Sequence record: MT799840.1
Reading direction: 5' to 3' (one strand)
Length of the DNA stretch: 64,000 nucleotides
Part shown: positions 3,416-55,823 of the stretch, in pieces
How positions within the stretch are numbered: position 1 is the stretch's first letter
How the letters are laid out: each line of letters starts with the position of its first letter
Translations under genes and position numbers: made by a program
Notes under the pieces: model-generated
What the model saw: only the letters and a program-made list of their open reading frames with translations
Database searches by the model: none
What the model was told of the DNA's origin: nothing

Positions 3416-4728
3416 TGTCGTTTGGTCGGTTACAACAGATGGCGAACGGTCACATCGCTAATGCTCGGGGGTTACCGGCTATCGACTACGGGATATTCCT
3501 CACGGTACACGGTGCCCCAGTGACGGTGTTGAAGATGCTGTCTATCATTCACACCGGTCACTTTACGCGTGATATCTGTTTATTGACACATCTCACCTTG
3601 GCTATACCCTACAGCCACATGCGAATGATCACGTCGTCCGCAGAAGGGGATTTGAAGGTAAAGCTGTTATTGCGTCGTGGACAGAAAATCGCGGGGGTCT
3701 TTAACTACCGCGGCATCGTGATAAATAACCGCGACCACAACGCGGAATCACCGACGATGTTCTTGAGTCAGTCTGATGAGAAATCTATCGCTTTGGTAAC
3801 ATTGGAGCTGATGGATGAGTCGATGTGGTTCCTGCGTAATCGTCAAGTGGGCGGTATCTACCACGAAACAGATGGGTTAACAGTGGCACGCTCGATACTG
3901 GCGGATACGTTGCCGGACGGGGTGGCTGCAGAGGGGCAGTTGAAAGGAATTGAATACGACGAGGAAGAACAGCAGGCATATCGGGACATCGTTATACCAG
4001 ACTCCGAAGACTTCTTAAGCGTGTTTGATTATCTGCAGAACCATTACGGTGTTTACAGCAAAGGTATTGGGGTCTTCCAATACCTACAACGATGGTATCT
4101 GTATCGACCTTGGGACTCGTTGAAGTTTAATAACACAACGAAGCCTAAACTGGTCATCTATAATCTGCCTCGTGAACAGGCTGCTCACATTGACCGCACC
4201 ACCGATATCGCGGGTAATGTTATCTATCTGATTTGTGGCGGCGACACCAGTAGTTTGGAATACCGTGACCAGGCCGCACTTAACCATGGTACGGGTTACC
4301 GGGTAGGGTCTGTACGTGTGTTGGATGGGCGTAGTAGTTCATTTACGCCTGGCGACATCAGTATGACCACACCTGATAAATTTGTGGCACAGGCTAACCC
4401 CGCAGCGTATCCCGGTGGCGTGGTTAACGCACCAATCGATCCTGATAAGCACTTTAGCGATACCGATAAACCACAGCGGTCTAAACTGGAGATGAGCCTG
4501 GGTACGATTGTGCAAACAACCTGGAACCGTTCAACGCACGGCATCCTATATCCCGGTATGCCAGTAAAATACGTTTTTGCCAACGAGTATGGGGTCTATA
4601 CCCGCTACGGCACGTTGGTGGGGGAGGTGTTCCAGTCTGCTGTCGACGGTCAAACGATGGCATCAGGACGCTATAACACCCAATCACAACTGAGTCTTTG
4701 GCTCAAAGATGAAAAATTTACAGCTTAG
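3415..4728 (+). CDS. Putative baseplate hub protein (T4 gp27/VgrG-like)
   Basis: 437 aa, beta-rich; layout (GGIYH...ARSIL...DIVIP...FDYLQNHYGVY) and C-terminal barrel-like segment fit hub proteins. Inference. Confidence 0.5.
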   Translation: MSFGRLQQMANGHIANARGLPAIDYGIFLTVHGAPVTVLKMLSIIHTGHFTRDICLLTHLTLAIPYSHMRMITSSAEGDLKVKLLLRRGQKIAGVFNYRGIVINNRDHNAESPTMFLSQSDEKSIALVTLELMDESMWFLRNRQVGGIYHETDGLTVARSILADTLPDGVAAEGQLKGIEYDEEEQQAYRDIVIPDSEDFLSVFDYLQNHYGVYSKGIGVFQYLQRWYLYRPWDSLKFNNTTKPKLVIYNLPREQAAHIDRTTDIAGNVIYLICGGDTSSLEYRDQAALNHGTGYRVGSVRVLDGRSSSFTPGDISMTTPDKFVAQANPAAYPGGVVNAPIDPDKHFSDTDKPQRSKLEMSLGTIVQTTWNRSTHGILYPGMPVKYVFANEYGVYTRYGTLVGEVFQSAVDGQTMASGRYNTQSQLSLWLKDEKFTA

Positions 4729-4740
4729 TCATCTAGTATG
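4718..4740 (+). promoter_or_regulatory. Bipartite promoter TTAC-N15-TATG
   Basis: AAAAATTTAC, then 15 nt, then TATG; 32 nt before ATG 4772. Confidence 0.65.
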
Positions 4741-4771
4741 ACCAGTAAGTAACCTTAAGGAAAATATTGCA

Positions 4772-5569
4772 ATGAAAGCGATTCACACCTTTCGCATGAC
4801 CGGCCAAACTGTTCTCGATATTGACGCGTATGAAGCCGCTAACTTCACCAAACCGACCAAGCTCTGGGATCGCCTGGTTAAGGTACTACCGCAGAGCGGT
4901 GAGGTGCAGTTGGATTTTGTCATGGCGTCGACGTTGGATAAGACAGTAGCAGTTATTTATACTGCTGACGGTGTGCAGAGTAAGAAGGACCTGGCAATCG
5001 AAGATAAAGGCGGGCTGGGCTATCACTTATTCCTGCACTGCGTAACCACTGCACCGATTTCAGCTGCGCTGGCGGGTCAGTACGGTTTCGCGAATGCGTA
5101 TTTCCTGGCACAGAAGCTCGCCGTGAATGTTATTCCGGGTGACGTGACCACTTACCCTGAATACGTACAGCGTATCCTGCCAGAACACTTCGCTGCAGAC
5201 GACTACGATTTCAATGTGTTCCGTTTCGCACTGATCGGCGAATCGCGCGATCCGGAGTACACCGTTGGGCTGCGTGCCTGTCTGCGTCACTCCGTTATCT
5301 CTTCGGACGAAGGGATGTCGAATAACGTGAACGAAGTGTTCCCGATGATGCAAGTCGGTCCGTATATCACTTTCAACTCGTACATTCCGTTCCCGGCACA
5401 GATTCTGCCGCCGCAGAACGATAACAGTGTACTGCCAATCGCCGACAAGTATTCACTGCGTGCGAGCGAAGCAGTTGAAGTGATTAACGATCGTCGCTTT
5501 ACATTGTCAGTGACCAGCGGCATCAGTGAACCGGAAGTTGCGGTCTCACAGAGCCTGGATTTGATGTAA
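4772..5569 (+). CDS. Hypothetical (likely virion) protein
   Basis: 265 aa, SD TAAGGA, own bipartite promoter at 4718-4740, terminator after. Confidence 0.7.
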   Translation: MKAIHTFRMTGQTVLDIDAYEAANFTKPTKLWDRLVKVLPQSGEVQLDFVMASTLDKTVAVIYTADGVQSKKDLAIEDKGGLGYHLFLHCVTTAPISAALAGQYGFANAYFLAQKLAVNVIPGDVTTYPEYVQRILPEHFAADDYDFNVFRFALIGESRDPEYTVGLRACLRHSVISSDEGMSNNVNEVFPMMQVGPYITFNSYIPFPAQILPPQNDNSVLPIADKYSLRASEAVEVINDRRFTLSVTSGISEPEVAVSQSLDLM

Positions 5570-5576
5570 AAGTGTG

Positions 5577-5611
5577 CCTGGTCTCCTTGTGAGACCAGGT
5601 CTCTTTATTTT
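5577..5611 (+). terminator. Intrinsic terminator
   Basis: CCTGGTCTC-CTTGT-GAGACCAGG + T-rich tail. Confidence 0.8.
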
Positions 5612-5662
5612 AGCCCTCTAAACGCACTCACAACCTTCTAAAGCCACTCTAACGGTAGAACG

Positions 5663-5716
5663 ACCCTCTATAGTGATAAAAGCTCTCAAAACGCGTTTGA
5701 GAGCGTTATAGAGGGT
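5663..5716. repeat. Long interrupted palindrome
   Basis: ACCCTCTATA (5663-72) pairs with TATAGAGGGT (5707-16); GCTCTCAAA (5682-90) pairs with TTTGAGAGC (5696-5704). Confidence 0.85.
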
Positions 5717-5735
5717 ATACTCTGAATAAAAATAA

Positions 5736-5811
5736 TTTCAGATATATATTACCTAGGTGATAGAAGACAATCTATCAACACAATCGACTATTAATCTAAA
5801 GGAGTATTGCC
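5736..5811 (+). promoter_or_regulatory. Early (virion-RNAP type) promoter cassette, copy 1
   Basis: TTTCAGATATATATTACCTAGGTGA + hairpin + AATCGACTATT + SD; TATATTAC is the phiKZ early consensus. Confidence 0.8.
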
Positions 5812-5955
5812 ATGTTAACTCGTAACCATAAACGTGCCATCTTTGCCATCGTTGCTGTTGTTGCTTTCGCGGTACTGTCTATCACTGTAACTCAAGATTA
5901 CAATAAGTGTATCGATAACGGTAACTCTGTTGCCATGTGTACAGGTCGCGGCTAA
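5812..5955 (+). CDS. Small membrane protein (47 aa, not in ORF track)
   Basis: Hand translation MLTRNHKRAIFAIVAVVAFAVLSITVTQDYNKCIDNGNSVAMCTGRG; SD AAAGGAG; stop overlaps next ATG (TAATG). Confidence 0.75.
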   Translation: MLTRNHKRAIFAIVAVVAFAVLSITVTQDYNKCIDNGNSVAMCTGRG

Positions 5956-6137
5956 TGGACTTTTCTGATGCGCAGTTTGCCGAGTTCTTATCTCACCCGC
6001 GTGTTAAACGTGAGTGGGATAATCTCACTAACAGTGTTCGTCGTCAGGACGAAGAAGAAATCGTTCACGTTACCGCACAAGTCTTACTCGTCTCACCGAC
6101 AGGTAATGTGTTTCCAATGCAGCAGGAGATTTACTAA
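5955..6137 (+). CDS. Small hypothetical early protein
   Basis: Start moved to ATG 5955 (MDFSDAQ...) by TAATG coupling. Confidence 0.65.
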   Translation: MDFSDAQFAEFLSHPRVKREWDNLTNSVRRQDEEEIVHVTAQVLLVSPTGNVFPMQQEIY

Positions 6138-6325
6138 TGGGTGTTTTAGTTAATTACGATGGTAAAAACGGAATCGTGCTTCGTGAAGTGGAAGATAACG
6201 AAGCAGTAGAGGTGAATCCGCAAACCTCAGAACGTACGTTTATCGTGGGGCCGAAAAGCGCACTACCGAAGCCGGACTGGAAAGAAGAGCTGGCGAAGTT
6301 CCGTGGGGAACTCGGGAAGAAGTAG
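6137..6325 (+). CDS. Small hypothetical early protein
   Basis: 62 aa, TAATG-coupled, followed by terminator. Confidence 0.65.
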   Translation: MGVLVNYDGKNGIVLREVEDNEAVEVNPQTSERTFIVGPKSALPKPDWKEELAKFRGELGKK

Positions 6326-6336
6326 TATAGATAATT

Positions 6337-9645: not shown

Positions 9646-10170
9646 ATGCAAATTCGTTTTAGTCCACCGTGGGAAGTTCAATCTAACATAGATAAAGGGG
9701 CTGGCGTTAAAAAGTTGGAGGAACTCCAAGCAAGCTTCTTTAACTGGTTATATGACTGCTCGTCGGGCTTTAGTTCCATCATACTGCCAGTGAGTGACCC
9801 TATTTCGATTTATAAATCGATTATGGCACCACCTGCACTTCCGACTCTTTATTATGACCAGGTCTTAAACCTGGTTGAGAAAGGTACGAATGAAACCCTT
9901 GCTGATTTATATGGGGAATCATTCGACGGTCGTTTACGTTGGGTGTTCTCACAACGTGGCGATGTTGTTGTGGCGTCTTTTGCAGAAGCTAAATCCGGAC
10001 CGGGTTTTTCTTTAAGTGAAGACCACGCTGCGAAAAAGATGTTCTGCGCAGAACTTTTTAAATATATGCGTCCCAAGACTCGTGTCGTGGATGATACGTT
10101 CAGTACGTCGACGCAGTTTGCTGCGCACGAAGTGCTGACGCAGTTGTACGCATGTCATTTATCTAAATAA
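9646..10170 (+). CDS. Minor virion protein preceding major capsid (phiKZ gp119-like)
   Basis: ATG 9646 after GGAG; conserved position between DnaB and capsid in phiKZ-like phages. Confidence 0.65.
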   Translation: MQIRFSPPWEVQSNIDKGAGVKKLEELQASFFNWLYDCSSGFSSIILPVSDPISIYKSIMAPPALPTLYYDQVLNLVEKGTNETLADLYGESFDGRLRWVFSQRGDVVVASFAEAKSGPGFSLSEDHAAKKMFCAELFKYMRPKTRVVDDTFSTSTQFAAHEVLTQLYACHLSK

Positions 10171-12559: not shown

Positions 12560-12588
12560 TTATAGATAGATATTATCTTAGGGAGAGA
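12560..12588 (+). promoter_or_regulatory. Variant early-type promoter
   Basis: TTATAGATAGATATTATCTTAGGGAGAG. Confidence 0.6.
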
Positions 12589-12618: not shown

Positions 12619-12816
12619 ATGGATATCGTTTTAGAGAAATCAAAACTGTCCGCACCAATGTTTGACGGTGCTGGATTTATGGTTCGTACGCACAGGGATA
12701 ACTCGTGGGCCACAAGTTTCGGGGGCGATGCTGACGTTCCTGTAGATAGCCAGACGTCTAATACCCTAAAGTTTTTTACGTTACGGGCACTGGGTATGAA
12801 CCCGTGCCCAAAGTAA
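12619..12816 (+). CDS. Small hypothetical protein
   Basis: 65 aa with strong SD TAAGGAG, between two early-type promoter motifs. Confidence 0.5.
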   Translation: MDIVLEKSKLSAPMFDGAGFMVRTHRDNSWATSFGGDADVPVDSQTSNTLKFFTLRALGMNPCPK

Positions 12817-12842
12817 TCTGAGATAGATATTATCTACGTGAA
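12817..12842 (+). promoter_or_regulatory. Variant early-type promoter
   Basis: TCTGAGATAGATATTATCTACGTGAA upstream of the nvRNAP-containing operon. Confidence 0.55.
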
Positions 12843-12874: not shown

Positions 12875-13879
12875 ATGAACCGTTATGATTTAGACGTTCA
12901 GCCAACGCTAACCCAGCGGCCCATGCACCGTGGTGCCGTGTCGAAGACTATCACGTACGAAAATAATACCGGGTTTCCCATATACGTCACTGAACTCAGT
13001 GGCGGGCATTTTGTTTTAGCCCCGTCGTCCACCACAGCGGCGGAATTTGGGATTGTGATTTACGTGACCTATACGGTGTTTGCGAACGGTGCGAACTTAT
13101 CTGGTTTGCGCGACGCGCATTCGCCAAAGCAGTATGCGCAGATATGTAAGGAATTAACTACGAACGGCGAAACAACGCTGATGTATGTAGTTGATGATAT
13201 CGGTGCGTTAATGCGAGGCGACTTGGTGGTGTTGAAGAAGCTAGGAATGGCTTTCTCTACTCAACCAGTAAAACTCGATTCTGAGGTTATTGGTAAGCCA
13301 GGAGGGGATCGTAAAGAATTTGCCTTGGGCGTGGTAGTTGTGCAGAAGTACGAAGACCCAGCACCTTTAAAGTGGCTGAGGTTCTATACAACGATGTTGG
13401 AAGTCGAACCGATTCGATCGAAGTATTACGACGAGGGTATTTACATGGTAATCGGTGGTGCGGAGTGTGTCGAAGGGGGTAAAATGATAATGTACTCTTT
13501 CGATGACCCGATGTCCCCGTTCCGGGCCTTTACATCTGAAGATGAAGCGAGGCGTTATCGGTGGCTCGATAACATTCCAGAGTTGCGAGATGTTCGTGCG
13601 AAGCTGGAAGCCACGTATCAGGCCAAGTTGCAAGATCTCGATGAGAAAAAGAATCGGCAAGACCTCGATTATCGTACGCAACTTAATAATTTGGCGCTGG
13701 AGAAGGAGAGGATTAACACCCTTAACACAATCCAGACGAATGAGCTTAAGTTGCGTTCCGATGTTCGTAAAGACCAATACGAGTCCCGAGCTTATCAGCG
13801 AAAAGATAGCTCGGAGTTCTTGAAATCCATTCCCGCGTATTTGGCTGCAGGGGTAGCGCTCGTTGGGATGATTCTCTGA
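12875..13879 (+). CDS. Conserved hypothetical protein with coiled coil and C-terminal hydrophobic tail
   Basis: ATG 12875; heptad-rich C-terminal third; ends IPAYLAAGVALVGMIL; coupled to next gene. Confidence 0.7.
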   Translation: MNRYDLDVQPTLTQRPMHRGAVSKTITYENNTGFPIYVTELSGGHFVLAPSSTTAAEFGIVIYVTYTVFANGANLSGLRDAHSPKQYAQICKELTTNGETTLMYVVDDIGALMRGDLVVLKKLGMAFSTQPVKLDSEVIGKPGGDRKEFALGVVVVQKYEDPAPLKWLRFYTTMLEVEPIRSKYYDEGIYMVIGGAECVEGGKMIMYSFDDPMSPFRAFTSEDEARRYRWLDNIPELRDVRAKLEATYQAKLQDLDEKKNRQDLDYRTQLNNLALEKERINTLNTIQTNELKLRSDVRKDQYESRAYQRKDSSEFLKSIPAYLAAGVALVGMIL

Positions 13880-15669
13880 TGGAGGCCGGTGTGTTTAAAG
13901 ATGCGATTAGGAAGATTAAAGAGGCAGGCGAAATAGTGCCTTTTAATCGTGCAATTGCAGAAGGAGTTGGGTACACACAAGCTAAAGATGGGATACATGA
14001 TCGTGTGGCAACCATTCTACGTCGTGAGCTGACGTACGATGAAATTGATAACCCGAAATTACCAGAAGGGTTAACGGTGTTAGGTTGTCGTCAGATGTCC
14101 CCGTTTGAAGCTTTTATCTTTAAGTTATCGAAGTCGGATAACAATTCACGAAATAATCGTGGCCGGTCAATTATTAACATCTCATCCACTGACACGTATA
14201 TGGTAATGGCCTCGTTCCGAGTTCCAGGTGATCCTCGCCCGGTACAACGTCCAATGAGCCTGCCATTTATTCGTCGTGGCGGCTTAATGAACTACTATGG
14301 TACAACGTACCACGTAGCACCTGTAATCCATCAACCTGGTATATGTCGTGAGCACGGTGGTATCTTTATTAACTTTGACTTCACTCGCAAGGTGTCTATC
14401 AAGTTCTGTAAGAAACCAACGAAGATTCTGGTGAATGGTCGCCCTGAGCAGCTGTTCTTGCCAGGTACATCGAATCTGTTTGTCTCAACTGGACAGATTG
14501 GACACGACACCGATGAGAAGCCACTGATGTATTGGCTCTTTGGGCGTTATGGCTTTAAACAAGCCGTGAAGCGTTATGCGGGCATTGATGTGGCGATTTG
14601 GCCGGCAATTAAAGTACGTGATGTGGACTTAACGAAGTATGTTGTGATTCAATCCGGTGAGCCACAACTCGCGAAGACCATCCAGTACGTGCTGTTGGTT
14701 AAACGTGAAGATATGCCTAACACCGATGCAGGGCGTTGGGATCAGAATGAACATCTGTTGCTGGTAGCGACTGCGGCATTCTTCAAAGCGGCGCACTACT
14801 ACGCAGGTAAACAGAACAGTAAGAACGGTCGTGCACCAACACTACCGGGGCTGTTTACACAGATTAATGAAATGGCAATGGACGAAGATATTGCAAACCT
14901 CAACTCTGCAGCGTCTTGGCGTGAAGTGTTGGGCCGCAGTATTCGCGGACTGAAGCCTTCGGATATCGAACTGAGTCGCAGCATGGACAGCCATTTCCAG
15001 GAATGTGAACGCTATGTCAACAGTACCTTCCGTGGTGAGCTGATGGCAAACGATCCGTCCATCCCTGATGATTTGGATATGTTTGATTTCCTCTGGTATA
15101 CCACGCAGCTGATGGTACGTACTCGACTTACCAAGCAAGATGATATTCCGTCTATGTACGGAAAACGTCTCACGGTAACCGATTACCTGTTGTTGGGTCA
15201 ACGTGGCTTTACCACAACGATCTCGAAAATACGTTGGAAGCTGGGGCAGTTGGAACATCGGACTCCAGAGACAGCGGCGAAGTCTATTCGAGACGCACTG
15301 AACAAACAGATCGTGCTCAATCTGGTGATGCGCACCATTACGAGCAACGGCGGTATCAGTTTCTTCAATGCCTCTACAGAATCAATGGTATTGGCAGTGT
15401 CTACGCACGCCATCGGTCAAACCGAAACCGATGCTAAGCGTTCGAAGAAAGGAGGCAAGACCGTTAACTTGAACGACCGTACTAAGCACGCATCTGCGTC
15501 GCATCTGGAATGTGGTAACGTCTACTATATTCCTAAGTCGGCACCGTTTAAGGCAAACATCCTCAACCCGTACATGAAGACCAACCCAAGTTTGGTAATG
15601 ATGCGGAATCCTAAACTGGACCCGTACATCAGACCGACCGAAGAAGACATTGCTAAAATCGGCCGCTAA
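13879..15669 (+). CDS. Non-virion RNA polymerase subunit, beta N-terminal part (phiKZ gp123-like)
   Basis: LPFIRRGGLMNYYGTTYHV resembles beta region B; ASHLECGNVYYIPKSAP resembles region D; known position downstream of capsid. Confidence 0.85.
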   Translation: MEAGVFKDAIRKIKEAGEIVPFNRAIAEGVGYTQAKDGIHDRVATILRRELTYDEIDNPKLPEGLTVLGCRQMSPFEAFIFKLSKSDNNSRNNRGRSIINISSTDTYMVMASFRVPGDPRPVQRPMSLPFIRRGGLMNYYGTTYHVAPVIHQPGICREHGGIFINFDFTRKVSIKFCKKPTKILVNGRPEQLFLPGTSNLFVSTGQIGHDTDEKPLMYWLFGRYGFKQAVKRYAGIDVAIWPAIKVRDVDLTKYVVIQSGEPQLAKTIQYVLLVKREDMPNTDAGRWDQNEHLLLVATAAFFKAAHYYAGKQNSKNGRAPTLPGLFTQINEMAMDEDIANLNSAASWREVLGRSIRGLKPSDIELSRSMDSHFQECERYVNSTFRGELMANDPSIPDDLDMFDFLWYTTQLMVRTRLTKQDDIPSMYGKRLTVTDYLLLGQRGFTTTISKIRWKLGQLEHRTPETAAKSIRDALNKQIVLNLVMRTITSNGGISFFNASTESMVLAVSTHAIGQTETDAKRSKKGGKTVNLNDRTKHASASHLECGNVYYIPKSAPFKANILNPYMKTNPSLVMMRNPKLDPYIRPTEEDIAKIGR

Positions 15670-15700: not shown

Positions 15701-17371
15701 ATGAGCATTACTGTTGAACAAATCAAAAACGTCATCGTTAAACACCTCGATCAGGACGCGGTACTGTCGCAGTTGAATAACGTGATGCGTAGTCGTAGCA
15801 TTCCGCCAGATCAGGCGTTAAAGATTGCGACGTATGTTGCGGCATGGGCAGCATCCAAAGGGGGTAGTGAAGCACAGGTTATCGCATATGCAGTCGATGC
15901 GTATAAAGCAGCTGCCTATCAGCAGGTACATAACGCAGGCGACGCGTATAACGACGATCGTCACACCAAACTGGTTAATGCTTGGGAACAAGTCGGTAAG
16001 ATTCTTGCCGAAATTCGTTCTCAGCAGTCTGGCGGTTTGGGTGGCAGTGGTGGTTTAGGTGGTGGTAGCAACGCAGGTGGGTTACTGGGCGGTAACAGTT
16101 CTGGCGGTGTTCGTGTTACTGATGGCCTGACCATGTCTTCTGCGCCATCTGGTGGTGTTAAGATTGGTAACACAGATGCGGCACTAACCGTGATTGCTGG
16201 CGGTGAAGGTCTTAACCTGGTCAATGATCCTATTCTGAACCCACAACCGGCGCAAGTAGCCCCAGCACAACAGCCCCGGCCTGAACCAGCACCGGTGCCT
16301 GTACAACCAATGCCGGTGTCTAATGCTACAGTTAATAACCCAGTGCTTTCCCCACTCGGCGCAACAGAAGAAACCGAGAAGGACACTATCAATGGCCCAA
16401 TTAACAACATTCTGCAGGAGATTGATTTGATGGAAGACTACGCACTTCACGAGCTGAAAACCCCCGAGCTTAAAATGTCGATTCCAGCGAAGGAAGCTAA
16501 CAGTCGCATTAAGCAATCTGTTTACGCGGAAACGCGTGATTGGGCTACACCGTTGCAAGATATCTTTAACGGTAATGAAGAGGTTGTTTTCTACGACGGG
16601 GCTGACCTGATTGTGCGTGCACGGGATAGTTATCGCGCGTATCTGGTCGGTGTTAACACTGACATGTGCGAACGCATGAAACAATTCGTTGCTAAGCACG
16701 ATGCGCTGAAATCCGATCTCGACAACCTGGCACTGGTAGAAGATGTTGAAACTATCATGGCTAAGGTGAAGCGTACGATCGATGAACTGCGTAAGAACAC
16801 GAAAGAACTGCACGAATATGCGATTGCGAACAGCAGCGAAGCAGAAGTGGTTATCAGTGAAATTTCTCGCTTTGCTAATGCGTATCTGGCAAACATCACG
16901 TTCCTAGTACACAATGCGTTATCGCTGGGCACTAAGCGCGGTAAAGATGTGCCGAAGTTCAAAGCTATCGATTTCGAACGGAAAATCAGCGATATTGATT
17001 TCTTCGTAAAAGATCTGTTCACAGCAACCGCTGGCGACAACGGCGTAAGTGAATATGAAGACTGGTTCCGTGACCTGTTCCTGATGGTAGCGAACTCTCT
17101 GCGCAAACTGACTATCAAGCTGAGCGATTCTGGCAAGGTGGTTAATCTGATTCAGAGCCAGTTCACCGTCGTGATTCCAGGCATGTACCATTCTGTTGAT
17201 AAACACGACGTAGTTACGGTAGCGTCTCTGGGCAATACCGCAGACCCGGTTGTGTCTATCTACGAAGCAGTACAGGAAAACGTGCCACATGCAATTGTGT
17301 TAATGCAGCTGCCGCAGCGCACCTACCTGCTTCTGAGCAATGGTGAGAAAACTGCACCAGTGTTGTACTAA
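15701..17371 (+). CDS. Conserved hypothetical protein with Gly- and Pro-rich linkers
   Basis: 556 aa, SD TAAGGAG, terminator after. Confidence 0.75.
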   Translation: MSITVEQIKNVIVKHLDQDAVLSQLNNVMRSRSIPPDQALKIATYVAAWAASKGGSEAQVIAYAVDAYKAAAYQQVHNAGDAYNDDRHTKLVNAWEQVGKILAEIRSQQSGGLGGSGGLGGGSNAGGLLGGNSSGGVRVTDGLTMSSAPSGGVKIGNTDAALTVIAGGEGLNLVNDPILNPQPAQVAPAQQPRPEPAPVPVQPMPVSNATVNNPVLSPLGATEETEKDTINGPINNILQEIDLMEDYALHELKTPELKMSIPAKEANSRIKQSVYAETRDWATPLQDIFNGNEEVVFYDGADLIVRARDSYRAYLVGVNTDMCERMKQFVAKHDALKSDLDNLALVEDVETIMAKVKRTIDELRKNTKELHEYAIANSSEAEVVISEISRFANAYLANITFLVHNALSLGTKRGKDVPKFKAIDFERKISDIDFFVKDLFTATAGDNGVSEYEDWFRDLFLMVANSLRKLTIKLSDSGKVVNLIQSQFTVVIPGMYHSVDKHDVVTVASLGNTADPVVSIYEAVQENVPHAIVLMQLPQRTYLLLSNGEKTAPVLY

Positions 17372-25685: not shown

Positions 25686-25730
25686 AGCCCTCTTCTCCTC
25701 CGGGAGAAGAGGCTTCTTATTTTTTTTTAT
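25686..25730 (+). terminator. Intrinsic terminator
   Basis: CCTCTTCTCC-TCCG-GGAGAAGAGG + T-tract. Confidence 0.85.
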
Positions 25731-25752
25731 TACGTCTACGTAAATTACTGTG
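25730..25752 (+). promoter_or_regulatory. Bipartite promoter TTAC-N15-TGTG
   Basis: Directly after terminator, before ATG 25780. Confidence 0.6.
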
Positions 25753-27794: not shown

Positions 27795-27830
27795 TATAGG
27801 GGCTTCGGCCCCTATACTGTTTATTATTTT
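27795..27830 (+). terminator. Intrinsic terminator
   Basis: TATAGGGGC-TTCG-GCCCCTATA + T-rich tail. Confidence 0.85.
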
Positions 27831-28494: not shown

Positions 28495-28499
28495 GACAC

Positions 28500-28546
28500 T
28501 ACCCTCGCCCGTTTAGCGAGGGTAGGTATTTATTTTTTTTTTTCTT
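28500..28546 (+). terminator. Intrinsic terminator
   Basis: TACCCTCGC...GCGAGGGTA + long T-tract. Confidence 0.8.
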
Positions 28547-28579
28547 ACGAATCGTCCACTCCGTATAGGAGGTAAGTCC

Positions 28580-29209: not shown

Positions 29210-29482
29210 ATGCAAACTACCAGTTTAGCTCGTCGTTTGTGGGAAGCATTCTTCCCTACGCCGTCAAAACCGATTAAGAAGGTGACTAGCCTTCGCTTGT
29301 TCCCAGGCTCCGAGGATGAGTTCTTCGATTACCTGGAACGCCACGGTTTTGATTCGAAAGTCGCACCACAAGAAAATGACCCAATTCAGACAGTTTACAC
29401 CACGCCGGATACGGGAGAGATATTTGCCTTGTGTGTTCGCTGGCCACATCGCAACTATTACTATACTTTGACGCAGATATAA
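29210..29482 (+). CDS. Hypothetical protein
   Basis: 90 aa with SD GAGG. Confidence 0.6.
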   Translation: MQTTSLARRLWEAFFPTPSKPIKKVTSLRLFPGSEDEFFDYLERHGFDSKVAPQENDPIQTVYTTPDTGEIFALCVRWPHRNYYYTLTQI

Positions 29483-31552: not shown

Positions 31553-32161
31553 ATGGTAGCTGTCCGCAGCGTGCCACATCAGACTGGCTCGCGATATACT
31601 TTTTGTGTAAAGCGTTTTGGGGCAAGAAATCGCCCTGGTTGGAAGGTGGTACGTGCGATGGGACAGTTCTGGCAATTACCACCTGGCACGTTAAAATATT
31701 TTTCAGTAGACAGAATAGCCCAGTTCTTAAATGCGGCCGACCCGAGTCAACGGTCCAGCTTTATGGCAGGGATTGTTTGTCGTCCCGATGGGAAAACACG
31801 CGACGCAACAACTCGCGGAATCTACTGGACAGGACAGAACGCGTTTCAGGTTGGTTTACCTTGCCTGAAGTGTGAAGTGACGCCGTTTAATGGCCCGTAT
31901 GCCAATGCGCATTTCACCGGTATCCTTGTGTCGTTCCCAGACGACCCGTCTTTAAACTACTTTTTATCAGTGGACAAAGACGTCAGTATTGATACCTTCT
32001 ACAAATACTTGTTGTTTTACAGCCGGTATATCCGCGTGACTCCTGTGCATGAAGATTGGTATTATAAAAATCCCTTGAACTATGGGAGGGACAGGAGACT
32101 AGAAGGATGTTCTATCGAGAGCTTCAACTCTGTACCGCAGCGCTCCATGGCGCTAATGTGA
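31553..32161 (+). CDS. Hypothetical protein
   Basis: 202 aa with SD AAGGAG. Confidence 0.6.
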   Translation: MVAVRSVPHQTGSRYTFCVKRFGARNRPGWKVVRAMGQFWQLPPGTLKYFSVDRIAQFLNAADPSQRSSFMAGIVCRPDGKTRDATTRGIYWTGQNAFQVGLPCLKCEVTPFNGPYANAHFTGILVSFPDDPSLNYFLSVDKDVSIDTFYKYLLFYSRYIRVTPVHEDWYYKNPLNYGRDRRLEGCSIESFNSVPQRSMALM

Positions 32162-33130: not shown

Positions 33131-33155
33131 CGGATAGATATTATTTTAGGGAGAC
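33127..33155 (+). promoter_or_regulatory. Variant early-type promoter
   Basis: TTTTCGGATAGATATTATTTTAGGGAGAC. Confidence 0.6.
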
Positions 33156-34016: not shown

Positions 34017-34056
34017 CAGGCATCCTTCGGGGTGCCTGTTTTATTTTTTTTTCTTT
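34017..34056 (+). terminator. Intrinsic terminator
   Basis: CAGGCATCC-TTCG-GGGTGCCTG + T-tract. Confidence 0.85.
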
Positions 34057-34077
34057 ACGTCTGGTCGCTATATTGTG
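34055..34077 (+). promoter_or_regulatory. Bipartite promoter TTAC-N15-TGTG
   Basis: Upstream of tmk. Confidence 0.6.
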
Positions 34078-34742: not shown

Positions 34743-34783
34743 GTACCCCTCTTACCTTCGGGTAAGAGGGTATTGTCTTTTTT
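34743..34783 (+). terminator. Intrinsic terminator (identical core to 7667)
   Basis: 28-nt exact match to 7667-7694. Confidence 0.85.
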
Positions 34784-34827: not shown

Positions 34828-34903
34828 TTTCAGATATATATTACTTAGGTGAGAGTTACTACTAAACTCTCTAATCGACTATTAATCTAAAAGGAGTATT
34901 CTA
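34828..34903 (+). promoter_or_regulatory. Early promoter cassette, copy 2
   Basis: TTTCAGATATATATTACTTAGGTGA + hairpin + AATCGACTATT + SD. Confidence 0.8.
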
Positions 34904-35269
34904 ATGCGTTTTAAACATCAAACCGTTGTGTTGGCAAAGAAAGCGTTTTTGGTTCGTCTTTCTTACATTATTACTCGTGTCACTGCGAAGGACGTTACGC
35001 AGAAAGACATTGCGTTATTAGTAGGCTGCTCACCGTCACAAATATCTGCGATTAAAAATGAACGTGAGAAGGCCGTGACTATCGAAACATTGATGCGGGT
35101 TGCTGATACACTGCGCCTGAATTACGAAATCGTCTACCGTTCTATCAACGGTAAATGTCGTCATAGCTTTAAAATTGAATCATGCATCGATTACATGAAC
35201 AACTGTCCTATCCGGGTACGAGAAACAGGACTTAAAGTCATGGCACGTAAACCTTCTGCAGTAATGTAG
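34904..35269 (+). CDS. XRE/Cro-C1 helix-turn-helix protein
   Basis: VTQKDIALLVGCSPSQISAIKNE...VTIETLMRVADTL is a canonical HTH_3 pattern. Confidence 0.85.
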   Translation: MRFKHQTVVLAKKAFLVRLSYIITRVTAKDVTQKDIALLVGCSPSQISAIKNEREKAVTIETLMRVADTLRLNYEIVYRSINGKCRHSFKIESCIDYMNNCPIRVRETGLKVMARKPSAVM

Positions 35270-36350: not shown

Positions 36351-36353
36351 TCA

Positions 36354-36390
36354 TTAAGGGGTCTTCGGACCCCTTAATTTTTTGTCTTTT
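36354..36390 (+). terminator. Intrinsic terminator
   Basis: TTAAGGGGTC-TTCG-GACCCCTTAA + T-tract. Confidence 0.85.
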
Positions 36391-36412
36391 TACGCGTTAT
36401 CCTCATGTTGTG
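36390..36412 (+). promoter_or_regulatory. Bipartite promoter TTAC-N15-TGTG
   Basis: Upstream of the GNAT-dam operon. Confidence 0.6.
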
Positions 36413-39085: not shown

Positions 39086-39898
39086 ATGCTGAGAGTTATC
39101 GAACGCACGGAGAGGATTCTGGACCGAACGTGGTTGGAAGGCCATAAAGCGTTATCGTTGTTAAATGATATCGATCCTTCCACGTTACAAGATGAACGTC
39201 GTCTTTACTACCGAATCTTTGAAGTATTCAGTCGGGACACAGTTGCGCCAGACGCGATCGTGCTCTGTCTGGACCACGGATACATGTTAGAAGTTATCAA
39301 TATGGTTCGTGCTTTAGACGCCCAGTTAACCTCGCTTGCGGATTCCTTACTTCGTGCAGCTGGGCGTAACTACGCGATGCATTTTACTCGTTCTGAAGGG
39401 GACGAATATGCACGCATGGGCTTTTGTTGCGAAACGATAAACTACCGCAAAATTAATACATTGGTGCCTAGCCACGATGAGGATTTCTGTGGGGATGTCA
39501 GTTCGTTGTTCGATAGTAAGAAAGCGTTCTTGGATTGGGTTAGAATGCTTTACGGTAAAAGCTCTATCTACTCAACGCTCGTTACGGGCGGGAGGATGAT
39601 GTCGTGGCGAAACGCTGATAGCTACAAGTTGACAGTGCTCTCACATCGTGGACAACGCTGGGTTATTGGTGGATGGTTTACCGCAGAAGGGGTGGTTACT
39701 CTAACTCGAGAGGAGTTCGGACTGTTGATGCATTGTATCCAGTCTGAATTACCGGTGGGGGATGAATTAGTTTACACTTACCACCAATATACTGGGGGGC
39801 CAGCCGCAATGTGGTTATTAGAAAACGGTTGGCTACCCGAAAGTTATGTGTACGGACGTGCCCTGAAAACTACTAATGGAGAAGATAATGCAAATTAA
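39086..39898 (+). CDS. Possible degenerate tandem GNAT-fold protein
   Basis: LEVINMVRA...DEYARMGF and WLLENGW end-motifs; size similar to neighbours. Confidence 0.4.
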   Translation: MLRVIERTERILDRTWLEGHKALSLLNDIDPSTLQDERRLYYRIFEVFSRDTVAPDAIVLCLDHGYMLEVINMVRALDAQLTSLADSLLRAAGRNYAMHFTRSEGDEYARMGFCCETINYRKINTLVPSHDEDFCGDVSSLFDSKKAFLDWVRMLYGKSSIYSTLVTGGRMMSWRNADSYKLTVLSHRGQRWVIGGWFTAEGVVTLTREEFGLLMHCIQSELPVGDELVYTYHQYTGGPAAMWLLENGWLPESYVYGRALKTTNGEDNAN

Positions 39899-40166
39899 TC
39901 GTACAGTGTCGAAGTCTAAAGAAGTCGTTTACAACGTTGAAGACGGTGATGTAATGCAGTTTCGTGCCGTCATTGACGAACAGCACGTACTCCAAGTCGT
40001 TTATTCGAAAGAAGAAATGACTCGCGCACATAGCCGCGTGTTAGAAAAACTCGTTGCGAAAGCCAAACAGCGCGACGGTATTAAATCCTACAACGTCATG
40101 TACGGTTATCAGCTACGTGAAGTGGAAGGGGAGTTGCTAATCACCCCTGTTCCGGTAACGGCGTAA
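39888..40166 (+). CDS. Hypothetical protein
   Basis: ATG 39888 after GGAG. Confidence 0.6.
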   Translation: MQINRTVSKSKEVVYNVEDGDVMQFRAVIDEQHVLQVVYSKEEMTRAHSRVLEKLVAKAKQRDGIKSYNVMYGYQLREVEGELLITPVPVTA

Positions 40167-40694: not shown

Positions 40695-40732
40695 GCCTCC
40701 TTGCCCACGGGTGAGGAGGTCCCTTTTTATTT
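40695..40732 (+). terminator. Intrinsic terminator
   Basis: CCTCCTTGCCC-AC-GGGTGAGGAGG + T-rich tail. Confidence 0.7.
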
Positions 40733-40753
40733 ACATCAGTCCACTAACTTATG
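40731..40753 (+). promoter_or_regulatory. Bipartite promoter TTAC-N15-TATG
   Basis: After terminator, before ATG 40786. Confidence 0.6.
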
Positions 40754-41403: not shown

Positions 41404-41433
41404 TTTTCAGATAGATGTTATTTTACTGAACCT
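41404..41433 (+). promoter_or_regulatory. Variant early-type promoter
   Basis: TTTTCAGATAGATGTTATTTTACTGAACCT. Confidence 0.6.
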
Positions 41434-41829: not shown

Positions 41830-42282
41830 GTGTTTCAATGTTCAGTCGTCAATGATGCGGAATTGGCCGCGTACAAGCAGCGCACAATCCGGGCGCTGGA
41901 TGCTGAAAAACCAGTCGATGTTAAAACGCGTGCAATCATTAGGGCATTTAGCGAATGGCCGAACATCGCAACCGTTTGGGCATTCACGGGAGAAGTTCGC
42001 AAAGACGGAGACAAGCTACGTACACGTAGACACCACAGCTTAACATTTGTGGCAACCGAGGCGGGTCTTAAAGACATTAACCATTTATTAGAAGGATGGC
42101 AGCCGCACGAGTACGGGAAACGTTTTCAGTTAAACTTTACTTGGCTGCGTCAAGAAGGCAATGCGAATCTCTGTTATCCAAGCTGGACGTTTAGACTCAA
42201 CTATCGACCCGACCCAGATGTGATGGAAAGTGTGATGGAGCACTGGCTCGCACTCGCAATTTTTACAGAACATAACCATTAA
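41830..42282 (+). CDS. Hypothetical protein, paralog of next gene
   Basis: VDVKTRAIIRAFSEWPNIATVWAFTGE aligns with VERGVRDACEVICRYPGATTMWSCHGH. Confidence 0.65.
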   Translation: MFQCSVVNDAELAAYKQRTIRALDAEKPVDVKTRAIIRAFSEWPNIATVWAFTGEVRKDGDKLRTRRHHSLTFVATEAGLKDINHLLEGWQPHEYGKRFQLNFTWLRQEGNANLCYPSWTFRLNYRPDPDVMESVMEHWLALAIFTEHNH

Positions 42283-45270: not shown

Positions 45271-45666
45271 GTGAAATTGATTATGCCTAAAACCGTTCCT
45301 AATCAGGATATGGTTACGACTACACTATTTTCTGAATCATTACGTAACTCTGTACGTCAGACCGCTTCACGTCTAGACGTGGCAGTTGAAGAACTCGACC
45401 CAGAAGTCTTCATGAAGTATGCGTTTATTGCAGAAGGTTACGCGATCGCCCTGAGTTATGCGCGGTATGTCGATGACGTGACAGAAGCTAAACGTTATTT
45501 AGAAGGCTGTTGTCAAGTTTTCCGTGAAGAAATCACCGAGATGGAGATGGTTGACCGTGGCTTACCTGAATTTGTAAAGGTGGGTTACGATAAGCTGTTG
45601 CAATCCATCGCGGATGAGATCAAACGTCGCGGGTTAACTGTTGCGCACAGTGCTACACTGCACTAA
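45271..45666 (+). CDS. Hypothetical protein
   Basis: GTG start after AAGGAG. Confidence 0.6.
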   Translation: MKLIMPKTVPNQDMVTTTLFSESLRNSVRQTASRLDVAVEELDPEVFMKYAFIAEGYAIALSYARYVDDVTEAKRYLEGCCQVFREEITEMEMVDRGLPEFVKVGYDKLLQSIADEIKRRGLTVAHSATLH

Positions 45667-49806: not shown

Positions 49807-49832
49807 CAGATAGATGTTATCTCAGTGAACCT
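49803..49832 (+). promoter_or_regulatory. Variant early-type promoter
   Basis: ATTTCAGATAGATGTTATCTCAGTGAACCT. Confidence 0.6.
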
Positions 49833-49839: not shown

Positions 49840-49862
49840 TTACGTTTCAATCAGAGCTTATG
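49840..49862 (+). promoter_or_regulatory. Bipartite promoter TTAC-N15-TATG
   Basis: AAATTTAC GTTTCAATCAGAGCT TATG. Confidence 0.65.
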
Positions 49863-52954: not shown

Positions 52955-53031
52955 ATTAGAGGTTGGCAGGCTGTTCGTTAATCCTTAAAAGCAACAGTTT
53001 CAAATTAGTTACGACCATAAGGAGTATTCAA

Positions 53032-53835
53032 ATGTTAAAACCACGCAAACAGAAAAGATTACAGTTTGTCAAAATAGTACATCCACAGTCCCGTCGTGTT
53101 ACAGGTGGACGTCTCTACGTGGGTAAACACCGTAGTCGTCTTATCACCTGGTCGGCAATGGCCAACGTAGCCACCCAACTCCAGGCAATGGTTGAAGACC
53201 GTTGCCAGTTAAAAGGGGATTTCTTTCAAGAGAAGAAACCCTATCGTGATATCTTCCGTACACTAAAAGCGTGCTGGGTACTCAGCTGGGTGCCTGGCCG
53301 CGAACAACTTTATTTTCTGCGTAAGTTCCCACGCCCTATGCCGAAGGAAAACATTAGCGTTTTCTTAGACAAACTAAAACGCTTTAATGACATCGGCATA
53401 AACGCTAATAAAGAGCAAGTTTCTGCTACAGTAGCAGCCCGAAAACACTTACGCGATTATGTGGCCGATCGAGATGTTGAGTTCGCTTATATGACGCCGA
53501 CTGTACCGCTGCTAAACGGTGATGCATTGAAAGCGAAGATGGAAGAGATCGCGTTGAAGTTTCCTAACATCAGACACATCGCACCAGACGCGGTACTACA
53601 GCTGAACACTGAAGGCTGCACGCGATTACCGACAGTCTCTGACACGGTGTTAGTATCAACACCTGATGTCCCTGAGGGGAAATCTTTCCTTGAAATGATA
53701 AAGAAACGTACAGAGGGTGGATATCAGCCGGTCTTTCTAGATTCCCTGTCAGAGCATCCTGATGCGAAGCAAGAGTTTAACATGAACACCAACAGCCCTT
53801 ACGACTCACTCTACAAGGATGGTAATGATGCTTAA
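53032..53835 (+). CDS. Hypothetical protein starting MLKPRKQKR
   Basis: SD TAAGGAG before ATG 53032. Confidence 0.7.
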   Translation: MLKPRKQKRLQFVKIVHPQSRRVTGGRLYVGKHRSRLITWSAMANVATQLQAMVEDRCQLKGDFFQEKKPYRDIFRTLKACWVLSWVPGREQLYFLRKFPRPMPKENISVFLDKLKRFNDIGINANKEQVSATVAARKHLRDYVADRDVEFAYMTPTVPLLNGDALKAKMEEIALKFPNIRHIAPDAVLQLNTEGCTRLPTVSDTVLVSTPDVPEGKSFLEMIKKRTEGGYQPVFLDSLSEHPDAKQEFNMNTNSPYDSLYKDGNDA

Positions 53836-54052
53836 ACCGAAGAAAAGAAAGAAGCCCATTAACATCATGCATGGTATATGTGGTGGTGTTGTTGGATATC
53901 GCGGTGATGTTCGTTTTCCAATTGGCCAAGATGCGATTGAGGGCATTCTGCTCATCTACTCACCGTCTGTAAATTACCCATCGGCTCCGAAGGTCGTTAA
54001 TCGTGTGTTAGAATTAGTGAGGACTGGCTATGTTAAAACCAAAGAAACGTAA
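53828..54052 (+). CDS. Small hypothetical protein starting MLKPKKRKK
   Basis: SD AAGGA; ATG 53825 or 53828. Confidence 0.55.
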   Translation: MLKPKKRKKPINIMHGICGGVVGYRGDVRFPIGQDAIEGILLIYSPSVNYPSAPKVVNRVLELVRTGYVKTKET

Positions 54053-54461
54053 AGATGGCGCAGTCATTCTCACTCCGAGAATTTCTGTGGCTGTTGGTAA
54101 GAAACTGGTGGTTCAAGATGGCAAGTGGTTAAGCGACGGTTTCCACAGCTATTCTGCCCATGCAATGGCTGACAATATGCGCGTGATGCACAACAGCCGT
54201 GGCCGCAACCGTCGCGACCAATACCCTAAGCCTATCCGTGTATTGGCGACGTGGTATATGCGCTACATGCAGAAGAATTTCGGTCATGACAAGTCCGTCG
54301 GTAAGATGGTGCACGAGTACAATTTCAAACGTGCGCAAAAAACACTCGCCGGTGGTGAAGTGGTACCACCGCCACGGCGTTTAGGTTACATGTCAGTCGA
54401 CCGTGCTGTTTTTGAACTACAGAATGCGGAAGATAAGGAGAATAACAATGTCGGGGATTGA
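54030..54461 (+). CDS. Basic hypothetical protein starting MLKPKKRKD
   Basis: SD GAGGA. Confidence 0.65.
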   Translation: MLKPKKRKDGAVILTPRISVAVGKKLVVQDGKWLSDGFHSYSAHAMADNMRVMHNSRGRNRRDQYPKPIRVLATWYMRYMQKNFGHDKSVGKMVHEYNFKRAQKTLAGGEVVPPPRRLGYMSVDRAVFELQNAEDKENNNVGD

Positions 54462-54834
54462 AGAACTCGAGAACGGGATGAAGTGCTACACGTTTGAAGA
54501 TGGGACGGTGTTGACTTCGACCACTAACGAACTTGCTGACCTGGTCCCCGACCACAACTATTTCGTCATGGGTAATGAGAAGGTTTATCCCGGTGGCGAA
54601 ATAGGTATTCTCTTTAAATGGTTCGTATGTGATGAAATCACCGACGATGAACGTTACGAACACGTCAGTAAGGCGATGTTCGAGACGGGTGAGATAGAAC
54701 ACACCGGTCGTGTACGTGTCCTTTCGAACGATGGACACGCTGTTGAGCTTGAATGGATCGCGTCCGGGCGTCCGAGACAGAAACACTATTATAACGGCAG
54801 CGGAATCACCACCGTTGCAGAAAGCCTTAACTAA
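54448..54834 (+). CDS. Acidic hypothetical protein
   Basis: SD TAAGGAG before ATG 54448. Confidence 0.65.
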   Translation: MSGIEELENGMKCYTFEDGTVLTSTTNELADLVPDHNYFVMGNEKVYPGGEIGILFKWFVCDEITDDERYEHVSKAMFETGEIEHTGRVRVLSNDGHAVELEWIASGRPRQKHYYNGSGITTVAESLN

Positions 54835-54838
54835 GGTC

Positions 54839-54876
54839 TACCCTACTCCTTCGGGAGTAGGGTTTCTTCTTTTTTT
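54839..54876 (+). terminator. Intrinsic terminator
   Basis: ACCCTACTCC-TTCG-GGAGTAGGGT + T-tract. Confidence 0.9.
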
Positions 54877-54897
54877 GCCTAGTCCGATTACAATTAT

Positions 54898-54974
54898 TTT
54901 CAGATATATATTACTTAGGTGAGAGTTAACCATTAACTCTTATCTAATCGACCATTATCTTAAGGAGTTTTAAC
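54898..54974 (+). promoter_or_regulatory. Early promoter cassette, copy 3
   Basis: TTTCAGATATATATTACTTAGGTGA + hairpin + AATCGACCATT + SD. Confidence 0.8.
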
Positions 54975-55421
54975 ATGTACATTCTGAATAACGAACTTAC
55001 TAAGTACGCTAGCAAAAACCCGATTATGATTTCTTTCCTAATCGTGATGGCGGCCAACAAACAAGACCCTAGCGAATTCACTACTGAGGACTTCGAAGAG
55101 ATTATCGCCAACGCCAAAGAAGCCACGTTCCAGACCACAGAACCTACTCGCGACGAGTTCCCCCTAGGTGAAACCGGCGATGTATTGTTTAACGACATGG
55201 TTGCTTCGTACTACATCAATAGACGTGGTATGGAAATCGAATACGACGAACTTCCTACTAGCAGCTTTGCTGAAATGATTCGTGATTATCGTCGTCAAGT
55301 TGTCTCTGACGATATCGTAAAAAAATACATGGCACAAATCAGCCCATTCAGTCTTGAATTCGAAAACCGCGCGATTGCCTTAGCAACACATCGCCTGCGT
55401 TTAGAAAAAGAAGTACACTAA
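54975..55421 (+). CDS. Hypothetical early protein
   Basis: First gene behind early cassette, SD TAAGGAG. Confidence 0.7.
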   Translation: MYILNNELTKYASKNPIMISFLIVMAANKQDPSEFTTEDFEEIIANAKEATFQTTEPTRDEFPLGETGDVLFNDMVASYYINRRGMEIEYDELPTSSFAEMIRDYRRQVVSDDIVKKYMAQISPFSLEFENRAIALATHRLRLEKEVH

Positions 55422-55482
55422 TAATAACCCGGCGGGCAAAGTCCCGCCAATTCACCCGCAATCTACAAAAAAGGAATATCCC

Positions 55483-55701
55483 ATGCGCAACCTGTTCTCC
55501 AAATCTGAAATCAAACCTGTTGTTGAAACCGCAGCCAAACGTAAGCCCGACATGATTGACCTGCTGCTGAAAATGTCTGCAGTAGAAGCCAAAGCTTTCA
55601 TGAATACAATGAAAGACGACGAGAAAACGATTGACAACGTTGAAGTAACCTACGGTGTTAAAGACCGCCCAAAGAATAACGGCCTTGTGTGGGTCTGTTA
55701 A
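55483..55701 (+). CDS. Small hypothetical protein
   Basis: SD AAGGA, 72 aa. Confidence 0.6.
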   Translation: MRNLFSKSEIKPVVETAAKRKPDMIDLLLKMSAVEAKAFMNTMKDDEKTIDNVEVTYGVKDRPKNNGLVWVC

Positions 55702-55725
55702 TCGACGATTGAGGATATAGTCGTG

Positions 55726-55780
55726 AAGAAAAGGGAGCTTCGGCTCCCCTTCTTTTTTTTGTTTCCTTTTCTTTTTTTGT
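55726..55780 (+). terminator. Intrinsic terminator
   Basis: GGGAGC-TTCG-GCTCCC + long T-tract. Confidence 0.85.
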
Positions 55781-55800
55781 TTGCTCTTGTTCAGATTCTG

Positions 55801-55823
55801 GTACGCGCCACGCTTTTAATATG
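55801..55823 (+). promoter_or_regulatory. Bipartite promoter variant GTAC-N15-TATG
   Basis: Upstream of the virion paralog array. Confidence 0.5.

Follow-up and report, generated by a model that had tools for sequence, protein, structure and literature searches.

A fixed-spacing two-box promoter-like element, TTAC-N15-TRTG, upstream of non-structural genes in Salmonella jumbo phage JN03 and its relatives

The nucleus-forming jumbo phages related to phiKZ, the group to which Salmonella phage JN03 belongs, encode both a virion RNA polymerase (vRNAP) and a non-virion RNA polymerase (nvRNAP), and nucleus formation has been reported for phages including SPN3US. Two promoter classes of phiKZ provide the closest described precedents for the element presented here. 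The middle promoters possess a weak motif, AAanTTACc, with its center near -24 (Ceyssens 2014, in the form cited by PMC7598289; Yakunina 2015, PMC4666361), and the late promoters consist of TATG with the G at +1 and are devoid of a conserved upstream element (PMC4666361). All four TATG positions are required, and pairing of TATG with a middle promoter has been reported for two cases only, P62M and P78M (PMC4666361). According to a review of the field, middle and late promoters of these jumbo phages are not predictable from sequence, and searches of the literature yielded neither a description of promoters nor a time-resolved transcriptome for SPN3US-like phages. In this study, we analyzed a 64,000-nt stretch of the JN03 genome (MT799840.1, genus Seoulvirus; genome positions 62001-126000), hereafter the window. 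JN03 is an SPN3US-like relative of phiKZ, and the window is 100% identical to JN03 and shares ~98% identity with SPN3US. The remainder of the 241-kb genome was scanned as well, so that the motif was tested genome-wide. An initial annotation of the window described both phiKZ classes accurately and proposed that in this phage they form a single bipartite element, TTAC-N15-TRTG (N, any nucleotide; R, purine), serving the nvRNAP. Both pieces, the TTAC box and the TATG-type start element, as well as their register are already known from phiKZ; their systematic pairing is new. With moderate confidence, we interpret the JN03 element as a phage-specific promoter class that resembles the phiKZ middle promoters and is read by the nvRNAP at two points.

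The first line of evidence is frequency. All eight exact TTAC-N15-TRTG sites listed in the initial annotation (beginning at 4718, 25730, 33165, 34055, 34782, 36390, 40731, and 49840) are present, and an additional exact site at 12776 and conserved variants at 42263 and at 9709-9687 on the minus strand had been missed (Table 1). Across the whole window and both strands, the pattern occurs 14 times vs. 4.79 (standard deviation 2.0) in dinucleotide shuffles. In annotated intergenic DNA of the plus strand (9 kb), we counted nine occurrences vs. 0.33 expected (standard deviation 0.58), with a maximum of three in 2000 within-segment dinucleotide shuffles, which bears out the previously claimed intergenic excess of eight vs. 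~0.1. Since these shuffles keep the T-tracts, the suspected inflation of the count by such tracts is accounted for. The stricter pattern TTTACR-N14-TRTG is found 10 times in the window vs. 0.72 expected. Exact matches inside or antisense to genes (5547-5569 on the minus strand, 4343-4365, 45438-45460, and 59962-59984) are about as numerous as chance predicts. The first of these follows a bidirectional terminator and points antisense into the gene at 4772-5569; no counterpart was found in CR5, a Cronobacter phage.

The second line of evidence is the spacing. On the plus strand of the window, 12 matches occur at a spacing of 15 nt, nine of them intergenic, vs. 1-5 matches (0-1 intergenic) at each of the other spacings between 5 and 30 nt. 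Genome-wide, 33 plus-strand matches occur at 15 nt vs. 3-12 elsewhere, and TRTG follows TTTACR 24 times at the fixed offset vs. 0-5 times at other offsets. This genome-wide spaced-motif search, of the kind suggested with the original proposal, revealed an excess at 15 nt only, in keeping with the claim of an invariant spacer. The sequence requirements are equally strict: any single-letter change in TTAC, or in the T, T, or G of TRTG, abolishes the enrichment. None of the single-base TTAC variants is clearly enriched, TCAC (9 vs. 3.9) and TGAC (7 vs. 3.9) being slightly raised. With T at position -2 (TTTG), six matches were counted vs. 0.6 at control spacings; this form was kept out of the consensus because four of the six are intragenic and without promoter context.

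Conservation also extends to positions that were not part of the search. We aligned 21 gene-adjacent sites to build a position weight matrix (PWM), numbering from the G of TRTG as +1. Outside the search pattern, T occupies -23 in 18 of the 21 sites, a purine occupies -18 in all of them (16 G, five A), and positions -26 to -24 are A or T, indicating that the full motif is wwwT-TTAC-R-N14-T-R-T-G (w, A or T). T is also found at -17 in 13 sites. The 13 positions from -16 to -4, and those after +1, contain almost no information. Within TRTG, the T, T, and G are invariant and position -2 is A in 14 sites and G in seven, in line with the proposed tolerance of TGTG; TGTG is kept in orthologues. When applied to the genome, the PWM returned 31 matches of at least 14 bits and 24 of at least 16 bits, vs. 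3.8 and 1.2, respectively, in Markov-shuffled, dinucleotide-matched random sequence. We estimate about 27-30 TTAC-N15-TRTG sites per genome, with 9-13 in the window.

Most of the 21 PWM sites lie 13-100 nt ahead of a start codon on the same strand, the interval constituting the leader. The typical order in the window is an upstream stop codon, an intrinsic terminator, a T-run, TTAC, N15, TRTG, the leader, a Shine-Dalgarno sequence, and ATG. The predicted terminators are strong, with a stem of 9-11 bp and often a TTCG loop. Five of the eight originally listed exact sites and the 28545 variant directly follow such terminators, as the initial annotation had noted of these promoters in general. 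At the terminator-less sites (4718, 12776, 33165, and 49840), TTAC is preceded by AAAT or TTTT; the presence of the same motif at these sites indicates that it is not a by-product of terminators. The three one-mismatch sites proposed earlier fared differently. The GTAC variant at 55801 has an equivalent in a relative (Table 1). At 28545, the spacing is preserved in orthologues and the TTAC is not, as these read TTGC-N15-TATA and TTCC-N15-TATG. The site at 27814 was discarded, its ATAC being part of a terminator stem and the orthologues lacking TAC at that place.

Two explanations that dispense with a phage promoter were considered. One is that the pattern is no promoter at all, and instead represents a by-product of T-tracts, an RNA-level signal, or the ATG and GTG start codons of short open reading frames (ORFs). 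Many sites do adjoin T-runs, RTG comprises the two commonest start codons, and a few sites lie in hairpins. Against this stand the T-tract-keeping shuffles described above, the four sites that carry the motif without a terminator, and a spacer that is free in sequence and fixed in length, unlike RNA structure. We therefore regard a non-promoter origin as scarcely credible. A role of RTG as a start codon was rejected, as translation would stop immediately at 25730 (GTG TAA) and 40731 (ATG TGA) and no Shine-Dalgarno sequence precedes it. A general start-site hairpin was also rejected, the mean folding energy being -7.0 kcal/mol vs. -6.9 kcal/mol for the genomic background, and no Rfam family or tRNA matched at the sites. 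Strong structure, defined as a folding energy under the 5th percentile of the background, is confined to five of 32 sites. In a minority, TRTG is located in the loop of a strong inverted repeat (window 12785-12808; genome 37155, 143682, and 201283). At 12776, JN03, SPAsTU, and Machina all have the hairpin, Asesino has a weak form, and CR5 has none; the stems do not align.

The other explanation is that the sites are sigma-70 promoters of the host, with TTTACR serving as a -35-like box; indeed, it matches TTGACA at four to five of six positions. However, there is no -10 hexamer, and positions -16 to -4 and +2 to +8 are almost free of information. Moreover, SPN3US is among the nucleus-forming phages, and transcription of phiKZ is independent of host RNAP. 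A scan for sigma-70 promoters (-35 TTGACA and -10 TATAAT, 16-18 nt apart) returned 16 sites vs. 21.3 in shuffles, none coinciding with a TTAC site, and this reading was rejected as extremely improbable. The resemblance to sigma-70 promoters is one of architecture: both have two short boxes with a spacer fixed in length and free in sequence, and in both the upstream box is duplex DNA at the place that a sigma-like subunit contacts or, in JN03, would contact. They differ in that sigma-70 promoters have a 17-bp spacer between the -35 and -10 boxes, whereas the downstream box of JN03 overlaps the start site rather than -10, and in the sequences of the boxes.

Table 1. Promoter-like sites and related features of JN03 (window coordinates unless marked as genome; nt distances are to the start codon or gene named)
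Position (strand)	Feature	Neighborhood	PWM score or other evidence	Relatives
4718..4740 (+)	promoter-like, TTAC-N15-TATG	G at 4740, 32 nt before ATG 4772	19.1 bits	CR5: TTAC-N15-TATG kept before CR5_063
9687..9709 (-)	candidate, TAAC-N15-TATG	56 nt before helicase start 9631; within 5' end of divergent + strand gene	15.8 bits	CR5: TTAC-N15-TATG, leader conserved; coding constraint of the overlapping gene could account for part of the conservation
12776..12798 (+)	promoter-like, exact TTAC-N15-TATG, intergenic	3' of major capsid gene; followed by early-type promoter 12822-12833, then operon with nvRNAP beta-like subunit gene	25.2 bits	kept in SPAsTU, Asesino, Machina, CR5
25730..25752 (+)	promoter-like, TTAC-N15-TGTG	directly after terminator 25689-25712 and T-run; G 28 nt before ATG 25780		SPAsTU and Asesino: TTAC, 15-nt spacing, and TGTG all kept
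28545..28567 (+)	weak variant, TTAC-N15-TATA	after terminator 28499-28525; 13 nt before ATG 28580	10.2 bits	
33165..33187 (+)	promoter-like, TTAC-N15-TATG	20 nt downstream of early-type promoter 33133-33144; G 58 nt before ATG 33245	25.2 bits	kept in Asesino and Machina
34055..34077 (+)	promoter-like, TTAC-N15-TGTG	after terminator 34017-34038; 40 nt before thymidylate kinase ATG 34117	23.9 bits	
34782..34804 (+)	promoter-like, TTAC-N15-TATG	after terminator 34747-34770; followed by early-type promoter 34833-34844, then helix-turn-helix (HTH) regulator gene at 34904 (HTH_3 domain)		conserved
36390..36412 (+)	promoter-like, TTAC-N15-TGTG	after terminator 36353-36378; G 28 nt before GNAT/Dam methylase operon 36440		SPAsTU, Asesino, and Machina, each with TGTG
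40731..40753 (+)	promoter-like, TTAC-N15-TATG	after terminator 40695-40720; G 33 nt before ATG 40786	23.8 bits	
42263..42285 (+)	conserved variant, TTAC-N15-AATG	26 nt before ATG 42311	12.3 bits	identical TTAC-N15-AATG in SPAsTU and Asesino
49840..49862 (+)	promoter-like, TTAC-N15-TATG	19 nt downstream of early-type promoter 49809-49820; G 24 nt before ATG 49886	23.9 bits	kept in SPAsTU and Asesino
55801..55823 (+)	variant, GTAC-N15-TATG	59 nt before 55882, first gene of virion-protein family	below PWM threshold	GTAC-N15-TATG in SPAsTU, upstream flank diverged
13879..15669 (+)	phiKZ gp123 homologue (SPN3US gp77), nvRNAP beta-like subunit		BLASTP 22% identity, E = 2e-22	
genome 24594-26228	phiKZ gp68 homologue		BLASTP	
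12565-12576, 12822-12833, 33133-33144, 41410-41421, 49809-49820	early-type motif			

If the element is functional, it should be enriched in related genomes, and this was found in syntenic regions of three phages: SPAsTU (Seoulvirus; 72% nucleotide identity to JN03; 10 plus-strand matches at a spacing of 15 nt), Asesino (Erskinevirus; 66% nucleotide identity; six matches), and Machina (Machinavirus; ~69% gp77 protein identity in its close relatives; seven matches), each with 0-3 matches at any other spacing. The element is thus strong in Seoulvirus, Erskinevirus, and Machinavirus. In a motif-anchored comparison of eight orthologous groups, core positions were 99-100% identical, as opposed to 43% for the spacer and 37% for the leader. 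Unanchored MAFFT alignments of two whole intergenic regions from four genomes gave the same picture, with conserved islands at the terminator, the T-run, TTAC(R), TRTG, and the ribosome-binding site, and a gapless spacer. At 34055 the islands comprise TAC and TGTG and the spacer is without indels; at 40731, TTTACA and TATGT are kept, and the spacer is diverged and ungapped. The base at -2 agrees in all 36 orthologous pairs (three TGTG and five TATG groups) in a search that permitted either purine, and this site-by-site fixation may encode strength or timing. Beyond these genera, we found no TTAC-N15-TRTG coupling in 42 kb of Goslar, a single site in 85 kb of Vibrio phage pVp-JHP1101, and, in the first 150 kb of phiKZ, no excess of TTAC placed 15 nt from TATG or TRTG. 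The last result suggests that systematic pairing is special to the SPN3US-like clade and not a property of the whole family.

The genes behind the sites encode thymidylate kinase, an HTH regulator, GNAT and Dam proteins, an SMC-like protein, an endonuclease with RNase H, a helicase, and the products of the thymidylate synthase operon and the nvRNAP beta-like operon. No annotated virion structural gene has one of the strong exact-TTAC sites directly ahead of it, and the motif is missing from the DNA in front of the vRNAP genes, the tail sheath, the terminase, and the capsid operon, where the best PWM scores stay below 4 bits. The absence of structural targets among the strong sites argues for a middle-type class over a general late promoter. 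The JN03 element shares several properties with phiKZ middle promoters: a TTAC at -22 to -19 that is preceded by an A/T-rich run and lies ~19-22 nt upstream of the presumed start, a similar number per genome (33 phiKZ middle start sites vs. ~27-30 JN03 sites), and non-structural targets. It differs in that the phiKZ middle motif is weak, its pairing with TATG is exceptional, and TTAC is followed by C, whereas in JN03 pairing is the rule, TTAC is nearly invariant and followed by a purine, and TGTG is accepted. We read P78M from the phiKZ genome as AAAATTAC-N15-TATG, with spacing identical to that of JN03; the JN03 element therefore appears to be the P78M architecture made general.

It could be argued instead that the element is the general late promoter of the clade, equivalent to the TATG class. 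Of the four positions of the phiKZ late consensus, TRTG matches three or all four, a four-base start-site element is common to both, and a gp123 homologue is encoded in the window; in addition, the 55801 variant precedes a family of virion-protein genes. That variant, which is sub-threshold, is the sole one before such genes, and the distribution of strong sites just described runs counter to a late role. Furthermore, phiKZ late promoters serve structural genes, require A at -2, and lack a conserved upstream sequence, whereas the JN03 element comes with an obligatory, strong TTAC box, frequently shows G at -2, and does not serve structural genes. A late-promoter identity is consequently very unlikely in our view. 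A quick search for a TATG-only late class in JN03 gave nothing clear, the greedy ORF mask hiding many sites. The element is also distinct from early vRNAP promoters, as it contains no highly conserved AT-rich stretch of ~10-12 nt centered near -10, a role filled in JN03 by the separate motif GATAGATATTAT. The late promoters of phage AR9 offer a further comparison, being short and recognized by a related phage enzyme, a split multisubunit RNAP whose fifth subunit is sigma-like (PMC5312081, PMC9209446). The AR9 promoter differs in sequence (AACA-N6-TA/G), in position (-11 to +1), and in recognition chemistry, which involves template-strand uracils (PMC5312081, PMC9209446).

A spacer that is free in sequence and fixed in length suggests that one rigid protein assembly contacts the DNA at two fixed points, and we propose the multisubunit nvRNAP as the enzyme that would read both boxes because a rigid two-point enzyme explains the spacer. 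In this mechanism, the upstream element wwwT-TTAC-R would lie at about -26 to -18 and the start-site element T-R-T-G at -3 to +1, with the G as the first transcribed base, in analogy to phiKZ TATG promoters. The beta-like subunit (gp77, the phiKZ gp123 homologue) would hold the non-template strand's TRTG, and the sigma-like subunit (the gp68 homologue), or a middle-stage accessory factor bound to it, would read duplex TTACR. Transcription would often be restarted just 3' of a terminator, sometimes in tandem with an early vRNAP promoter, and the class would drive DNA-metabolism and other non-structural genes as the counterpart of the phiKZ middle promoters. Structural data on phiKZ provide a framework for this model. 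In the 2026 cryo-electron microscopy structure of its nvRNAP with a promoter analogue, a pocket of gp123 buries the four non-template bases TATG (PMC12809450), and two C-terminal loops of gp68 touch the upstream duplex at -22/-23 and -18/-19. The T-TTAC-R box of JN03, at -23 to -18, coincides with the stretch touched by these loops. SPN3US gp77 has been named an N-terminal nvRNAP beta fragment, and the residues of the gp123 pocket that align as conserved in JN03 are the Phe stacking on G+1, a Ser-His pair, one more Ser, and, in place of Tyr406, an aromatic residue. Neither the gp68-like nor the gp123-like protein had a Pfam match.

Several observations weigh against this model. P62M and P78M are poor templates for purified phiKZ nvRNAP in spite of their correctly placed TATG (PMC4666361). 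Hence, of the earlier proposal of one bipartite element for the nvRNAP, the fixed-spacing bipartite promoter signal is supported, and the assignment to the nvRNAP alone is not. The phiKZ gp68 contacts at -18 to -23 are made to the phosphate backbone and not to bases, the C-terminal domain of the JN03 homologue was left unaligned with phiKZ gp68 by BLASTP, and, by our own reading of the BLASTP alignment, the gp123 pocket residues are only partly conserved. About a third of JN03 sites have G at -2, though phiKZ requires A. Placement of +1 at the G in SPN3US-like phages is by analogy with phiKZ, and the "middle" timing of the JN03 element is deduced from gene functions only. Lastly, CR5, a fairly close relative, possesses only three to four sites and no spacing spike in 91 kb, which suggests that the upstream box is evolutionarily dispensable; the box has been lost, or was never gained, in that lineage. 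At several orthologous positions, CR5 keeps a TATG after the terminator without TTAC. Most commonly, a CR5 terminator is followed either directly by a ribosome-binding site or by TATG without TTAC, and two such sites share TATGTATCC.

Some of these observations favor a different reader, in which a separate middle-stage activator would bind TTACR and recruit a polymerase, or a modified vRNAP would read the element. The failure of purified nvRNAP on middle promoters including the TATG-bearing P78M and P62M and the backbone-only contacts of gp68 are as expected in that case, as is the CR5 pattern, since an accessory factor could be dispensable. In the phiKZ study itself, three possibilities were put forward, namely modification of the vRNAP, modification of the nvRNAP, or recruitment by a DNA-binding factor (PMC4666361). 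Possible factors are encoded in the window. SPN3US gp78 is essential and its loss halts production of many proteins; its homologue (15701-17371), which we consider a candidate transcription factor, shares an operon with the nvRNAP beta-like gene and is encoded shortly downstream of the 12776 site. In addition, an HTH protein is encoded at 34904-35269. On the other hand, the early vRNAP motif of JN03 is quite different, and direct contact by the holoenzyme accords at least as well with the strict 15-bp spacing and with the exact coincidence of TTACR and the zone contacted by gp68. We judge an activator or modified vRNAP to be unlikely, though an accessory factor or other polymerase form is a serious alternative reader. 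As regards the two-point nvRNAP model in its strongest form, it is at best a tentative possibility that in SPN3US, Asesino, and Machina the gp68 homologue reads TTACR base-specifically and the beta-like subunit reads TRTG. If true, such two-point recognition would be the missing specificity determinant of jumbo-phage nvRNAP promoters, and the site-specific A or G at -2 would encode a second layer of strength or timing.

The JN03 element could make promoter choice by jumbo-phage nvRNAPs, and with it middle-promoter recognition, directly testable. A promoter class that is unpredictable in phiKZ is readable from sequence in the SPN3US-like clade, where the sharp, conserved two-box motif would be better suited than phiKZ to a search for the reader of the upstream box, and amber-mutant genetics are established for SPN3US. 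The motif also permits annotation of transcription units in dozens of jumbo phages of Salmonella, Escherichia, Proteus, and Erwinia, and the compact terminator-promoter cassettes could be of use in phage engineering.

A second, longer and stronger motif, tCA-GATAGATATTAT-CTnnGTG, is present in ~25 copies genome-wide, including copies before nvRNAP subunit genes (genome 24546, 29706, and 74822). Most probably, the vRNAP reads the GATAGATATTAT motif as its early promoter. Early-type and TTAC-type elements occur in tandem, 19-30 nt apart and in either order, at 12776/12822, 33133/33165, 34782/34833, and 49809/49840, suggesting that transcription of the downstream genes may proceed in two phases.

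Several long "intergenic" regions of JN03 are probably coding, since relatives annotate genes at places matching unannotated JN03 ORFs (window 29210-29482, 31553-32161, 39876-40166, and 41830-42282). We also observed a sub-class of early-type sites with an invariant AGATATATATTACYTAGGTGA (window 5741-5800, 34833-34900, and 54903-54960; genome 58072, 165091, and 223656). In these, the motif leads into a sequence-variable hairpin, after which come a conserved AATCGACYAT box and a ribosome-binding site, an arrangement that looks like a shared 5' leader architecture; the box itself occurs four times in the window vs. 0.3 expected.

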